A stretch of DNA of 64,000 nt from Macrostomum lignano (Eukaryota), in NCBI GenBank assembly GCA_002269645.1, contig NIVC01000687.1, positions 1 through 64,000 on the forward strand. The letters run 5' to 3'. Shown piece after piece: positions 22,440 through 34,400 of the stretch. A program made the translations under genes and the position numbers. Each line of letters starts with the position of its first letter. Positions within the stretch are counted from its first letter, which is position 1. The notes under the pieces are model-generated. The model was not told the DNA's origin and did no database searches. It saw only the letters and a program-made list of their open reading frames with translations.

Positions 22440-25400
22440 TCAGGACAGCGTGATGGTACCGTCCCAGGTGAGCTCGGCCTCCTCCGTACCGAGTGAGTTC
22501 TCGGCGGTGCACACGTACGTGCCCTTGGCTTTGTCAGGGCCGATGTTATCTGTCGGCAAGGGGTGGGGTTGCGGATCTTTGAAAGGCCTGTCTGTCTGTC
22601 TGTCTGTCTTAGTGTCTTAGTGTCTTAGTGTCTGTCTGTCTGTCTGTCTGTCTGTCTGTCTGTCTGTCTGTCTGTCTGTCTGTCTGTCTGTCTGTCTGTC
22701 TGTCTGTCTGTCTGTCTGTCTGTCTGTCTGTCTGTCTTAGTGTCTGTCTGTCTGTCTGTCTGTCTGTCTGTCTGTCTGTCTGTCTGTCTGTCTGTCTGTC
22801 TGTCTGTCTGTCTGTCTGTCTGTCTGTCTGTCTGTCTGTCTGTCTGTCTGTCTGTCTGTCTGTCTGTCTGTCTGTCTGTCTGCCTGTCTGTCTGTCTGTC
22901 TGTCTGTCTGTCTGTCTGTCTGTCTGTCTGTCTGTCTGTCTGTCTGTCTGTCTGTCTGTCTGTCTGTCTGTCTGTCTGTCTGTCTGTCTGTCTGTCTGTC
23001 TGTCTGTCTGTCTGTCTGTCTGTCTGTCTGTCTGTCTGTCTGTCTGTCTGTCTGTCTGTCTGTCTGCCTGTCTGTCTGTCTGTCTGTCTTAGTGTATTAG
23101 TGTCTGTCTGTCTGTCTGTCTGCCTGTCTGTCTGTCTGTCTGTCTGTCTGTCTGTCTGTCTGTCTGTCTGTCTGTCTGTCTGTCTGTCTGTCTGTCTGTC
23201 TGTCTGTATAATTGTTCTTGTATCACAATACTTAACTATCCACCGCATTAAAAAACGTATTTTATCTTCGAGTAACTTGACAATAAGAATTAGATTTCCA
23301 TTAACAAAATAGCGGGAGTACTTTGTGCAGGTATTCTCGCATCAGCATTTCTCACCGGTGGGAAGTCTGAAAGAGATAATTGATCATGTATGTCAAATCG
23401 CGATTTGACATTCTGAATGCGATCAAATGCATGCGGATTAAACGCGTGAAAATTCTCACTTGTAAAGAAGCTGCGATCCGTATCTGTGAGAGTTAGCATC
23501 GTCGTAATAGGCCTCCTCAATCTGTCTAATCCACCTGGGATTCTCCAGTCGAACATTCCGGTTGTCCATGTCGTACCTGATGATCTCCAGATCCGGATAG
23601 GGGTAGCCGACGAAAAAACAGTCGAACTCAATGTCGCCAGATGCTGTCTTAACGATCTTCATCTCGCCGTACTTTCTTGAACCGTCACCCTCACCGGGCT
23701 TTGCTGTTGTTTTTGGAGAATGTTTTTATTGAACTACGTGTTCTATACAGTTGGAGATTTTGGAAACACAAATCTAGGAAGCCATTTCTAAGTGTAGAAA
23801 GTCAAGGGAAGCCGAAGAAAGTCCACAAAAGCAAGGGAAGGAAAATATTCTATGGCCACATCACAAGACAAAGACAGTAAACAAAATGCAAGCAGCCCAG
23901 TTGTATAATCAGCAACACAAAAGCTTGGCTCACTCATCACGAGTGCCTTAACCGGCACAGACTGCATCTGATAGTCCCGGTCGCCAGTTACGTTGGTGAA
24001 TGGCCTGACTGCAACACACATGAAGATGCCAGAGTTCATTACTGAGCTTGTTCGCACCATCAGGGTAGCCTTGTTGCCCTCCAGGCTTTTCTGCATGGAC
24101 GACACTTCCGTTGTCGTGCCGGCGATTCTCTCGGCGTAGAGGCATTTGTAGTTCTTGCACTGCCGTGTTTAGCAATTGATATGTGAGGAGCTGGACGTCA
24201 AGCAATAAAACTTAAGATCACGGACATCACTGTCAAAACAGATCTTTAACAGTAACCCGACGGATGGCCTGCATAGCAGGCCATAGAGTCTTTCCACTCA
24301 AAACGGTTATTTATGCCGTGCAGTCTGTGGGTAAATTAATGTCAACTCTAGCTCACTATTCCAGACGGCTAATTCTGCTGAGCCGAACGATTGACCATAG
24401 ATATCTGTGTGGCACTGCAGTTAAGGACTGATGACCTGCATGGCAGGCCATCCGCTAATTCAACAGAAGCAAAGACACGGTATTACGCTGTGGTTCAAGA
24501 TAATTTTATTTATGGAAGAGAACAAACCGTTATTAAAGGGAATATTTTTTACTTCTTAATCTGACAAATAGCAAAAAGTACCCGCGGTTTCAACAAGAAG
24601 AACTTTACAAATTTATTAAAATACGAGTACGCAGAGGTTTTTAACAGAAATGAGTACGAATATATAAACTTTCGGGAATTTACTATGTCAATTACTGAGA
24701 AGAAAACTATTGATTAATAAGTTCAATGGGCTTAAGTACAAGGATATAATTTATCATGACATCAAAATATAAAAGAGATTTATACACGTAAGCCATTGAA
24801 TCAACATATAGAGTTAAATCAATTTTGCTATATTCGATTATTTATTAATTTGCCGATGCATTTGGTCCACAATGGACATCTTCAGGGCTTCATTAATACT
24901 CGTAATTTAATAGTCAGATAACGATTCAGCACAATTGAATTTATTTTATATGTTAATTCTCGCTTTCGTTTATCTAATTTTTTTTCAAGCGAGCTACTAA
25001 TTTACCTAAAAGAGATTTAAACAACAGAGTATAGCAGAAACTTCAACTCAATATATCAAGTTTTGTGAATGTGAGTTAGAATAACAAAGCCAGAATTAGT
25101 TCTCCGTGTGCCACTCCCGAAAGCATTCACCAATGCACAGTCCGGGTGACCCTTGGCAGCTGGAGCAGACAAAGACTGTCTTTTTCTGAACACCATTTTG
25201 CCAGCAGACTCTGCATCTTTTGGCAGGTCTTTCTTGAGCTGCTGTCGCTGGGAGACGTTGAGCGTAGTGGCCATTGTTCTGCTGTGCCTGGCCATTCACA
25301 GGAGCAGCCCGTTTTCTGCCAGTACCAGAGTTGACCATTAGCTGACGCACAGTTGTGCGCAGAAATGAGAGAAATTTAGCGGACTCACCAGCCTTCGAAT

Positions 25401-31400: not shown

Positions 31401-34400
31401 GATCTTTAAGGTAGCTACCTTGACCCAGTCGAGATATCTGTCCTCCCCGAAGGTCCTGTCCACCCCGGTATCGTAGTTCTGCAGCGTGCAGGTCAGCTCG
31501 ACCGCCGGTCCGTTACGACGCAGCTCGATGGTGTCGGGATTTTGAATGATTAAAGACGGATCCGTGCTGTCCTTCATTGTCACCAGGATGCTGGGCTTCT
31601 CGGGCATAGCTGATTTTAAATGAACGGGGGCATGTTCAACAATGGTAGACTATGAGCAACTTGGGCCTAGATCAGGGCCAGGAACCAGGGAGTCAATTTG
31701 AAGGAAGTCTGGGAGCCAATCTGGGACTGTCAAGGGTCAGCAAGTCTTTTAGAATAAGAATAATTCGGAGAGTCGACAGACAGTATCTATTAGAGTCTGT
31801 GTGCCGGAGTTAGGGAGACGGAGAATCAGGGCGCCAGTCAAAGTAACTCGTAGTCAAAGACACATTGTAGCTTGTATTTGAGACAGAAAGTGATAAGTAG
31901 ATTAGGAGAGTCATCTAGGGCAACATGGAGCCAGTCGGTAAAGTTAGAAAGAAATATTAAGTAGTTTGGAGCCTTGCATCGCACACTTACTGAAGACGGT
32001 AACCTTGAAGTAGCGCTGCCCGATGCCCTTTGTAGCAATGTCCGAGTCATTCTGTGGTCGAACAAAGCAAATAATTTCTTTATTATCAAGCGTCTCGGAT
32101 ATGTCTGTGAGGGTCAGAGTGTTGCCAGCCGGGGAGGCGTAGTGCGGCAGGCCATCCTGGCCCAGGATGTAGAACTCATACCGGTGAGGATACGGGATTT
32201 CTGACAGTCGTCCGCCCCTTTTGAAAATCAAATGAGTAAAGAGAAAGTTAATGAGATTGCTACTTACGAGCTATAATTTATAATCGATAAATAATAATAC
32301 TTTGACAGCTTTGAAAAGTATGCCTCATGGATAGCTTACTCATAGTAGCCAGCATCGCATCGGATGAGGGCCACTCCGCCCCGAAGCATATAGAACCTGA
32401 GGTCGCGCTCGTCGTACCCATACCACTTGTTGTAGTATTGAAGGCGGATTTTAATTTTCGATGGTACCTTGACAAAGTCGAGCTTTTTCGTGTAGGTAGT
32501 TATTTTACCAGTGTTCGGGTTGGCCTGTTTAGCGCGGCACTGCCACTTGAAGTCGGCGTACTGTTCGTACTTTCCCAACGGGCAGAACACAATGTTAGCC
32601 ATGACTTGCATTTTATTGCACTGCTTGATCAAGTCGGGCACATCCGATGATGACATTGGATTGTTGTGCACCAGCTCGAGCTCAGTACCGTACGGGTTTC
32701 CAGTCATGTGGCAGAAGATGTACACGCCTGGATCTTTGTAGCCGTCATCGGCCATGCCAAATTGGCCCATCGGAGAGTACACGATGTCAGTTACATCGTG
32801 GCTGTCATTTTGAACTTTGTACATCATGTTGTAGGTGTTCTGGACAATAATCTTCAACCTCAGTGGGTCATCTATGAGAGATTTGGAGTGACAGGAAAGT
32901 ATTCATACAAGAGTTAGCAAACTAGGCATGAAAAAACCAAAGATTTATTAGCTCTTAGTTGGGTGAAAGCTGGCGGATGTTTTTCTAGTGGTGGGATCAT
33001 CTTGTTTTCTTTGTCTAAATTTAATAATTCAGTTTTATTTGCGCTTAGTGCGTGTACTATATTGCGCTTATTTGGTGATCGTGTATCAAAAAAGTCAATA
33101 AAAACAAGTGACAATTTAAATATCGACAAGTGCTTACAATCCGTAGATTCGTAGCGCATGTTGATAATTTTGGTTTTGTGCCCCACATCATTCTTTGCAT
33201 TGCACGTGAATGGCAGCTGATGCTCGTGCTTGTCCATTACAAAGGTGATGTTTGAGTAGCTACGATTTCCGATTACACCTTCGTCGACAAGCTAGAACGA
33301 TTAAGTCGATCACTAGTTAGCGTAAAATAAACTTTCTAAATTGGTAATCAGATCTACATACAGTTATGCCAGGTATTGTCGTCGCATTCTTGTCCCAAAC
33401 TTCCCACCAAACCCTAGCTGTGGGTATGGCATCCACGTCGTAGCAGTAAAACCACTGTCGCTTTCCATTCACGAAAGTTCGCTCTGATACTTCGTATTTC
33501 GGATTTGGTGGTTTTTCTAAAATTTAGGAGTAGGTTTTAAGTAGATAATTATTGTGTACGCTCGTAATAATAATTTTAGGTTGTACACCTTGATCAAACA
33601 CGAACCTTCGACAGCTGAAATAAAAACATTGTACTCCATCACCTTGGACGACTGCACTTCGCGACCCGGCCGATAGAATGTGTGACAGCGGCAATAGTAC
33701 ATGCCTGAGTTTGTGTGCTCTGCCTTTGTAATGTTCAGTGTTGGTCTGGTCTCCGAAAAGAGCTGGATCATCTTCGGCGCAATACGGCGCCCCAATAGTT
33801 GCCGGGCACTCTTCTGGGGCTTGTACACCCATGAATAGCGCTGGCATGGAAGTCCGTCTTCGTCCAAGTTGTTCGTTTCCGGCAAGCAGTTCAGAGTAAC
33901 GCTTTCACCCTCGTTCAGATTGATGTTCCTCGTACCAACCATTTGAGGCACAACTTCGACGTCCGCCTTCTTAGACTCGCAGGAGTCAGAGCCCACACTC
34001 CGGCCAGACGACCTGGTTGAGTCAGGTTTGCGCTGGCAGCTGAATGTGCCCCAATGCTCTACGCTGAGAGGGTTCAGCACCAGATCGTCACCGTCGCGAG
34101 ACACGCCTGGTGGAAGAGAGTCCGCTAAAGACTCGTCCATTATGCTGTAGTTCGGCTGATCGGGAGCTCCAAGGGGACTTGCGAACAAAGACGTCGCTTC
34201 CCTTTTGGCCGGTTTGAAGGTCCATACAATCGGGATGGTGACTGCATTGGGGCTGCGTACAATTTTATTGCACTTTAGCCGCACCGCGCTACCAACTGGC
34301 TGCTCGACTTTTTTGACCGGCGTGTTGAGGTCCCAGATGAAGGCTTGTTCTGCAATTTCGAAGAATACGAGTATTTCACCAGTGATAAACATAAAGACAA

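Follow-up and report, generated by a model that had tools for sequence, protein, structure and literature searches.

Arthropod gene clusters of the Dscam1 type contain alternative half-immunoglobulin (half-Ig) exons, and in the concerted evolution of tandem repeats, conversion tracts can end where they meet a microsatellite or run out of homology. In human nebulin, a triplicate region repeats eight exons three times, and titin has a segmental-duplication region (PMC9109913, PMC9142044). The present study concerns an in-frame tandem array of three multi-exon Ig units in the flatworm Macrostomum lignano. The DNA analysed, hereafter the window, is a stretch of 64,000 nucleotides (nt) (NIVC01000687.1:1-64000; assembly Mlig_3_7, GCA_002269645.1, inbred line DV1), and the array lies at the end of the gene BOX15_Mlig024543g2 on its minus strand, whose protein, PAA78466.1 (P0035, 2001 amino acids (aa)), has already been deposited, as 'hypothetical'. 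The locus of PAA78466.1 (L002) is identical base for base to window positions 56627..13342 of the minus strand. A literature search for Ig tandem duplication in Macrostomum found no paper describing the array locus.

The Mlig_3_7 assembly was built from PacBio reads with Canu and then polished with short reads, and its annotation is a genome-guided transcriptome made with StringTie and TACO, plus mapped de novo transcripts (PMC5730564). Family members were collected by a protein search with a rough gene model, which led to two M. lignano proteins, and a 90% cluster supplied further members.

Architecture and splicing of the Ig array

Self-BLAST and repeat finding revealed three head-to-tail units with spacings of 2082 and 2113 nt (Table 1), which follow one another in the gene in the order C, B, A, each unit of ~2.1 kb coding for two Ig domains. 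An earlier note on this DNA had described three units of exons a-b-c-d, each of 263 aa and spliced phase 1 to phase 1, and this layout was recovered: exons of 191, 226, 244 and 128 nt (789 nt, 263 codons) occur with GT/AG borders in all three units. Exons a-c, said there to translate identically, were found to be identical even at the nucleotide level across units A, B and C. Both internal boundaries read GGGCCTGA + CTAAACT + AAACTACTTAAT, so that the novel junction claimed in the earlier note is the same joint twice (CCTGA+CTAAACT+AAACTAC), with the CTAAACT filler in each. The array is thus a head-to-tail multi-exon block with a novel joint inside one gene, and the duplicated block begins 24 nt into the intron that follows an upstream single-copy exon. 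Introns included, the units are nearly identical, with 0-2 point differences per 1600 bp outside a microsatellite and the last 160 bp as the exception; since the unit introns are identical, the units must have been duplicated or homogenised very recently. Unit C has two private differences, one single-nucleotide polymorphism (SNP) at 31750 and one homopolymer indel, and no other point differences occur 5' of the microsatellite; apart from these, B and C differ only in repeat counts.

The deposited coding sequence (CDS) ends in three concatenated units, and the last 811 residues of PAA78466.1 could be rebuilt exactly from window exons, which bears out the suggestion that the array is read in frame through d-to-a splices. 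The evidence for this splicing is second-hand, coming from the deposited RNA-guided annotation. In that model, exon c is joined to an 11-nt micro-exon (acceptor ctctttcag, donor GTGAGA) and the micro-exon to a 90-nt exon d' (acceptor cgccgccag). The exon model of the earlier note therefore held only in part: exons a-d with GT/AG borders exist in the sequence, whereas the RNA-guided annotation replaces the 128-nt exon d, whose acceptor would be the final CAG of the microsatellite, by the micro-exon and d'. The unit then measures 762 nt and 254 aa, 762 being, like 789, a multiple of 3, and most of the 'PLPT/PSPP' cluster of variable residues becomes intronic. The micro-exon is also present in four independent models of paralogous loci, and it accounts for an apparent third exon-d type in the protein P0002 (UniProt A0A1I8GQH7; the seemingly intermediate 'LPT'), which was accordingly rejected.

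The donors and stops listed in the earlier note, GTACGA (B/C) and GTACCA (A), and TITLS-stop (A) and TITLSRARA-stop (B/C), are all present. The GTACGA donor of each internal d' is joined to the next exon a (..TYD/AMPEKPS..), giving two d-to-a junctions in PAA78466.1. In the window, the junction from d' of B/C to exon a reads CACCTATGACG followed by CTATGCCCGAG, and the micro-exon (CTTCCCACCG) is continued by AGAACATTGG in units B and C and would be continued by ATAACATCGG in unit A. The A-type d' lies outside the annotated protein, as the deposited CDS reads through the unit A micro-exon to a stop. Donor scores were 1.7 for GTACGA and -2.0 for GTACCA, with -0.5 to 3.4 for the other donors of the gene, values that are indicative only, the donor matrix being hand-made. 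In units C and B, the stretch from d' to the following exon a contains neither AATAAA nor ATTAAA.

Three paralogous loci, L001 (NIVC01000113.1), L004 (NIVC01000866.1) and L005 (NIVC01003524.1), differ from the window at ~3-3.3% of aligned bases and carry one unit each, against three in the window, followed by a flank that is colinear with that of unit A down to window position 22162. Paralogue models end in ..TWDGTITL-stop, with d' as the last coding exon, read through to a nearby stop. Both fates proposed earlier for exon d, splicing on and reading through, are therefore present in the annotation, the former in the window locus and the latter (TITL-stop) in the single-unit paralogues. In L001 a canonical poly(A) signal follows (AATAAA at 19994), and the window has in common with it only the ATTAAA at 22238. 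At window position 22162, the homology to the three paralogues stops exactly at their AATAAA (aagaatcaATAAAcg against aagaatcaGTAGAAT), so that the window copy of the gene lacks the main poly(A) site of the paralogues. Downstream of this point the window consists of purine-rich low-complexity DNA (20778-21746) and a Polinton-like element.

With the support of the deposited models, we infer that a last exon was turned into an internal one. The ancestral gene would have ended in d', with a phase-1 GT five codons before the stop, and the duplication would have carried along d', this latent GT and the stop, leaving out the poly(A) region. Internal copies with the latent GT and without a poly(A) signal would thus be spliced on to exon a of the next unit, and each extra unit would add 254 residues. 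As to the paralogous gene models, residues 591-862 of P0002 were considered as a spliced-on exon and rejected as part of a chimeric gene model; this tail corresponds to the C-terminal domain of a multi-copy family of ankyrin-repeat proteins, unrelated to the Ig gene, that has an EELQEDPDL repeat. Its sequence lies at L001 20243-21133, and the window has no counterpart. Exon a of L001 (17344-17534) is one base shorter than that of the window within a run of GGGG, which shifts the deposited model P0001 out of frame; this is either an assembly indel or the sign of a broken paralogue.

The divergent end block and the origin of the array

With the microsatellite excluded, unit A differs from B/C by 0 substitutions per 1600 bp but by 13 per 160 bp in the last stretch (Fisher p = 1.8e-14). 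Within the 128-nt exon d, 11 nt differ between A and B/C (B = C), as the earlier note had counted, and 8 residues are changed; within the annotated d', 9 of 90 nt differ, and seven of these nine changes are non-synonymous, for a total of 6 replaced residues. Exon d contains every coding difference between units, and only two exon-d variants exist among the three units. The variation is nevertheless wider than one exon, contrary to what had been claimed, since A also differs from B/C by two substitutions in the 32-nt tail after the donor, by a 2-nt indel just before the exon and in the 3' part of the (ACAG)n microsatellite. This repeat, 314-620 bp long, is present in every unit, and its 5' pattern, (ACAG)~20 GCAG (ACAG)4 ACACTAATACACTAAG (ACAG)5 GCAG, is common to A, B and C, whereas the 3' interruption pattern of A differs from that of B/C. 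The shared 5' pattern, together with the differing 3' pattern and the 2-nt indel, indicates an ancestry switch inside the repeat, and the repeat of unit A is a double-length composite with a B/C-like 5' structure followed by a different 3' part. At the two markers private to C, in the 5' part of the unit, A equals B and differs from C, whereas B equals C and differs from A in the 3' part, as expected if B arose by unequal crossover between the first and the last unit.

Selection on codons cannot explain the contrast of 0/1600 with 13/160. Non-coding and coding positions of the block diverged to a similar extent (4/70 and 9/90, p = 0.39), and the ratio of non-synonymous to synonymous divergence (dN/dS) between A and B/C was 0.99 for the annotated d' and 1.31 for the 128-nt exon, not significantly different from that of exons b+c (0.44; p = 0.39). 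Microsatellite-induced mutation was ruled out, because the 5' flank of the repeat has 0 substitutions against 13 in the 3' flank. The block, which spans the sequence from microsatellite to breakpoint and whose 5' changes fall mostly within an intron of the RNA-guided model, is best read as older sequence that was either spared homogenisation or brought in by exchange; the diversification of one surface region that the earlier note proposed is not supported. An AlphaFold2 model of P0002 made without an alignment had a mean predicted local distance difference test score (pLDDT) of 35 and was unusable for placing the variable residues.

Comparison with the paralogues placed the block in time. L001, L004 and L005 have one exon d in common, from which A differs at 7 sites and B/C at 4, none of them shared, so that the three exon-d types form a star. 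The exon-d distances to the paralogue type are 5.5% (A) and 3.1% (B/C), and the divergence between window and paralogues is 2.7-3.7% in exons a-c and 3-7% in introns. The exon-d branches are thus of ordinary length for the locus, indicating that the block is as old as the paralogue split and that it is the rest of the unit which is unusually uniform. Moreover, a second contig of the window type, L003 (NIVC01000414.1:601213-624594), is 99.9% identical to the window locus upstream and ends 799 nt into the first unit, before exon d. At 31750 it has the SNP of unit C, and at 31543 it retains the ancestral G in place of the derived A seen in units A, B and C; with the window units and the outgroup, all four combinations at these two sites are present, as expected if conversion spreads changes between units. 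The break of L003 inside the first unit may mean that the assembler failed to resolve the array in that copy. Neither the A-type nor the B/C-type exon d was found in the other family contigs of the assembly, L001, L004 and L005 carrying an intermediate type, and queries with the 263-aa unit or a 62-aa piece of exon d gave no homology matches, hence neither fragments derived from transcripts or reads nor an independent copy of the joint.

We give about even credence to an account in which an early tandem duplication was followed by homogenisation of the units up to the microsatellite, a short end block escaping. A 2.1-kb block of last exons coding for two Ig domains would have been duplicated in tandem via a non-homologous joint with a 7-nt filler, and the third unit would have come later, from unequal crossing-over among these units. 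The rest of the unit, introns included, may then have been homogenised by gene conversion or unequal exchange, the homogenised tract ending inside (ACAG)n, while the block between the microsatellite and the breakpoint would have kept a divergence dating back roughly to the separation from the paralogous gene and would evolve neutrally. On this account exon d is not hypervariable. Several points weigh against this account. It needs a long and recent conversion tract, since 1.6 kb identical in three units stands beside 160 bp at 8%, and it presupposes that the first duplication is old, although each of the three paralogous loci sampled has a single unit. The four-gamete pattern hinges on a single site and might stem from faulty polishing, the neutrality test has little power with a synonymous count of only 2, the use of A-type d' is unproven as it is absent from the deposited CDS, and the unit number, the composite microsatellite of A and the d-to-a splice rest on the Canu/PacBio assembly and its deposited annotation.

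The ancestry switch inside the microsatellite and the double-length composite repeat of A would also be expected if the triplication were recent and all units were at first of B/C type, a later crossover or conversion in the microsatellite of the last unit having brought in the 3' half of the repeat, the A-type exon d and the downstream flank from a diverged allele or paralogous chromosome. DV1 has three subgenomes at ~2% SNP divergence (PMC10733133), and no long homogenising tract would be required. The donor would, however, have to be unsampled or lost, given that no other family contig in the assembly has either window type of exon d and that the sole other window-type contig is 99.9% identical upstream and ends before exon d; we regard such an exchange as unlikely, if still a serious candidate. 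Part of the pattern might instead be an artefact, through a contig switch between near-identical copies in the 620-bp microsatellite of A or through a wrong unit number. Mlig_3_7 is a short-read-polished Canu/PacBio assembly of a highly redundant genome with three subgenomes (PMC5730564), collapsed and mosaic sequences are known for it (PMC10733133), NIVC01000414.1 breaks off inside the first unit, and B and C are almost indistinguishable. Overlap of homologous reads, though, cannot make a novel joint with filler, so that at least two units are real, and distinct units must exist because the SNP of C recurs in the independent contig L003, with B and A keeping the ancestral base. In addition, the d-to-a junctions of the RNA-guided model can be obtained only from an array, and units of 2.1 kb are well below PacBio read length, all of which makes an artefact quite improbable in our judgement.

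The restriction of all coding differences to exon d, with the 6 replacements of d' surrounding an invariant 18-residue core, would also suit selection that keeps two half-Ig versions apart so that the binding surface is diversified, perhaps with alternative splicing or alternative ends. Exon d is constant among the three single-unit paralogues and changed on both window branches, and selection against homogenising d would give the same block pattern. Such selection is nonetheless very unlikely, since the dN/dS values are not significantly different from that of exons b+c, neighbouring non-coding sites diverged as much as coding ones, only two variants exist, and the limits of the block are the microsatellite and the breakpoint and not the exon. 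Furthermore, the deposited mRNA model holds both internal d' exons and leaves out the A-type exon, and a titin Ig alignment, weak and of low confidence, puts some of the changed residues at strand-core positions and not in loops. We would grant a very slim chance to the specific case that the d' versions are kept apart by selection and used in different transcripts, as internal versus terminal or as alternative last exons; were it true, a lineage-specific secreted flatworm Ig protein would have gained functionally distinct C-terminal Ig domains via a latent-donor duplication. The account that we favour remains the early duplication with later homogenisation.

Mobile elements and feature coordinates

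Intron a-b of unit A holds an insertion, and units B and C have an empty TTAA site at the corresponding place. Its transposase matches PF13843 (DDE_Tnp_1_7; E = 4e-39) and also PF13842, with the reading frame broken into three pieces, and its inverted repeats are sub-terminal, 29 nt long and 93% complementary. The insertion is a piggyBac transposon, showing all the hallmarks that were tested.

Elsewhere in the window, a 14.5-kb Polinton/Maverick-like element (5640-20134) is bounded by inverted 84-bp tandem repeats (5640-5849 and 19918-20134), and a copia-type retrotransposon gag-pol, disrupted into several frames, together with a fragment of a second, different piggyBac-type transposase, was found at 2486-5593 and 1247-1753. 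Two open reading frames (ORFs) at 43002-45915 of the minus strand, in an early intron of BOX15_Mlig024543g2, match DUF3504 and, weakly, phage integrase, suggesting a Crypton-like tyrosine recombinase; one of them is annotated as a separate 441-aa gene, and the sequence of L001 differs there. A 402-aa ORF in an intron of the gene (37507-38715, minus strand) has Cys/His pairs at its start and no Pfam match, and is possibly part of a further mobile element. Among the minisatellites listed in Table 1, those with 25-bp and 21-bp units are reverse complements of related sequence, and the 26-bp array continues past the window end.

Table 1. Positions of the array, its exons and signals, and other elements in the window (a slash marks the exon border at a donor)
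Feature	Position	Strand	Remarks
Whole array, last coding exons of BOX15_Mlig024543g2, three times	22428..31967	-	self-BLAST, repeat finding
Unit C, first in gene, 2106 nt	29862..31967	-	private SNP 31750; C5 (not C6) homopolymer near 31631
Unit B, middle, 2075 nt, hybrid	27780..29854	-	5' markers as A, 3' block as C
Unit A, last, 2381 nt when the transposon insertion is left out	22428..27772	-	self-comparison
Filler CTAAACT (7 nt), C-B joint	29855..29861	-	
Filler CTAAACT (7 nt), B-A joint	27773..27779	-	identical to C-B filler
Upstream single-copy exon	31991..32217	-	donor A/GTAAGT, phase 1
Exon a, first half of Ig 1, 191 nt	C 31419..31609; B 29305-29495; A 27223-27413	-	
Exon b, second half of Ig 1, 226 nt	C 31094..31319; B 28980-29205; A 23934-24159	-	
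Exon c, first half of Ig 2, 244 nt	C 30620..30863; B 28506-28749; A 23460-23703	-	
Micro-exon ACTTCCCACCG (LPT), 11 nt	C 30516..30526; B 28402-28412; A 23356-23366	-	deposited RNA-guided model
Exon d' of C and B, 90 nt	C 29894..29983; B 27812-27901, identical	-	donor G/GTACGA; deposited model
Exon d' of unit A, 90 nt	22460..22549	-	donor G/GTACCA
Exon d of the earlier note, 128 nt	C 29894-30021; A 22460-22587	-	
(ACAG)n microsatellite, intron before exon d	C 30022..30367; B 27940-28253; A 22588-23207	-	twice as long in A
Divergent block of A, 160 nt	22428..22587; counterparts B 27780-27939, C 29862-30021	-	13 differences (11 in exon d, 2 in tail)
Read-through stop TGA, unit A	22440..22442	-	..TWDGTITLS-stop
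Read-through stops, units B and C	B 27780-27782; C 29862-29864	-	..TITLSRARA-stop; last bases of units
Deposited CDS stop TGA, past unit A micro-exon	23342..23344	-	..LLYKLPTGEKC-stop
ATTAAA, first poly(A)-signal-like hexamer past array	22233..22238	-	conserved in paralogue L001
piggyBac-type insertion, 2960 bp, intron a-b of unit A	24250..27209	-	TTAA at 24246-24249 and 27210-27213
Polinton-like element: rve integrase	7224-8144		
Polinton-like element: protein-primed type-B polymerase pieces	9439-12647		
Polinton-like element: A32-like packaging ATPase	14673-15473	-	
Polinton-like element: double-jelly-roll capsid protein	17340-18578		
Minisatellites, periods 31, 25, 21 and 26 bp	50487-51269, 51895-52206, 48789-48851, 63178-64000		

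Comparison with known systems

The only hydrophobic segment of PAA78466.1 is a signal peptide at its N-terminus, and the protein is accordingly predicted to be secreted; it contains laminin-EGF and laminin-B modules as well as numerous Ig domains of low score. Pfam matches of P0001 comprise PF00053, PF00052 and several Ig families, and the same families are on record for P0035. A phmmer search of P0002 against 1.84 billion representative proteins, which covered its Ig part and in which the laminin-B part was not searched separately, found no homologue of that part outside M. lignano, every other hit being confined to the ankyrin-family tail of P0002, and a sequence search of solved structures gave only weak titin and LAR Ig matches (E = 0.015-0.02). 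The idea that the unit belongs to an older homogeneous Ig array was rejected, as it has no significant similarity to the upstream Ig domains of the gene. Among basement-membrane proteins, perlecan (HSPG2/UNC-52/Trol) and hemicentin-like proteins are likewise secreted, and in them, too, laminin-EGF and laminin-B modules are accompanied by an extended series of Ig domains; the resemblance to perlecan is to its middle part. Its end modules, SEA, LDL-receptor-A, laminin-G and EGF, are absent from the Pfam matches of P0001 and P0002 and from the P0035 record, and PAA78466.1 ends directly after the Ig array, so the array protein should not be classed with the perlecans. Invertebrate models of this sort often contain tandem Ig repeats that are nearly identical (e.g., P0017).

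With Dscam1, the array has in common that the variation lies in a half-Ig exon within a tandem arrangement. It is nevertheless unlike Dscam-type clusters in every defining feature tested, as a whole five-exon block of 2.1 kb is repeated instead of single-exon variants, only two variants are present, and two d' exons stand together in one deposited CDS instead of one per mRNA. As under concerted evolution, the units are mostly identical up to a simple repeat, where old divergence sets in abruptly, and a hybrid middle unit occurs together with a four-gamete pattern between units and contigs. The difference is that conversion is here inferred, and exchange with an unsampled haplotype would look alike.

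The locus offers a clean, datable example of repeat-protein growth. Although the tandem duplication took in the last coding exon, a single protein can still be read from the copies, thanks to a GT of suitable phase shortly ahead of the former stop and to the absence of a poly(A) signal from the copies. The locus also illustrates that concerted evolution can mislead, as a seemingly hypervariable exon may be the sole part of a unit that was not homogenised, and that at a locus so rich in repeats the assembly and gene models of this polyploid model flatworm need checking with long reads. The last exon made internal through a latent donor is a mildly instructive detail and no new kind of system.

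Among known systems, the nearest parallels are found in human nebulin and titin, with their in-frame triplications of exon blocks. In these, as in Macrostomum, a multi-exon block stands head to tail within one gene, the copies are near-identical including their introns, the frame is kept across blocks so that they are read as one longer repeat protein, and the regions are prone to unequal exchange and copy-number change. The Macrostomum array differs in that its units are small (2.1 kb), one short block is 8% diverged, and the copy-number difference is known between loci only. Moreover, its block holds the ancestral last coding exon, and the joining of units thus depends on the latent GT five codons before the old stop.

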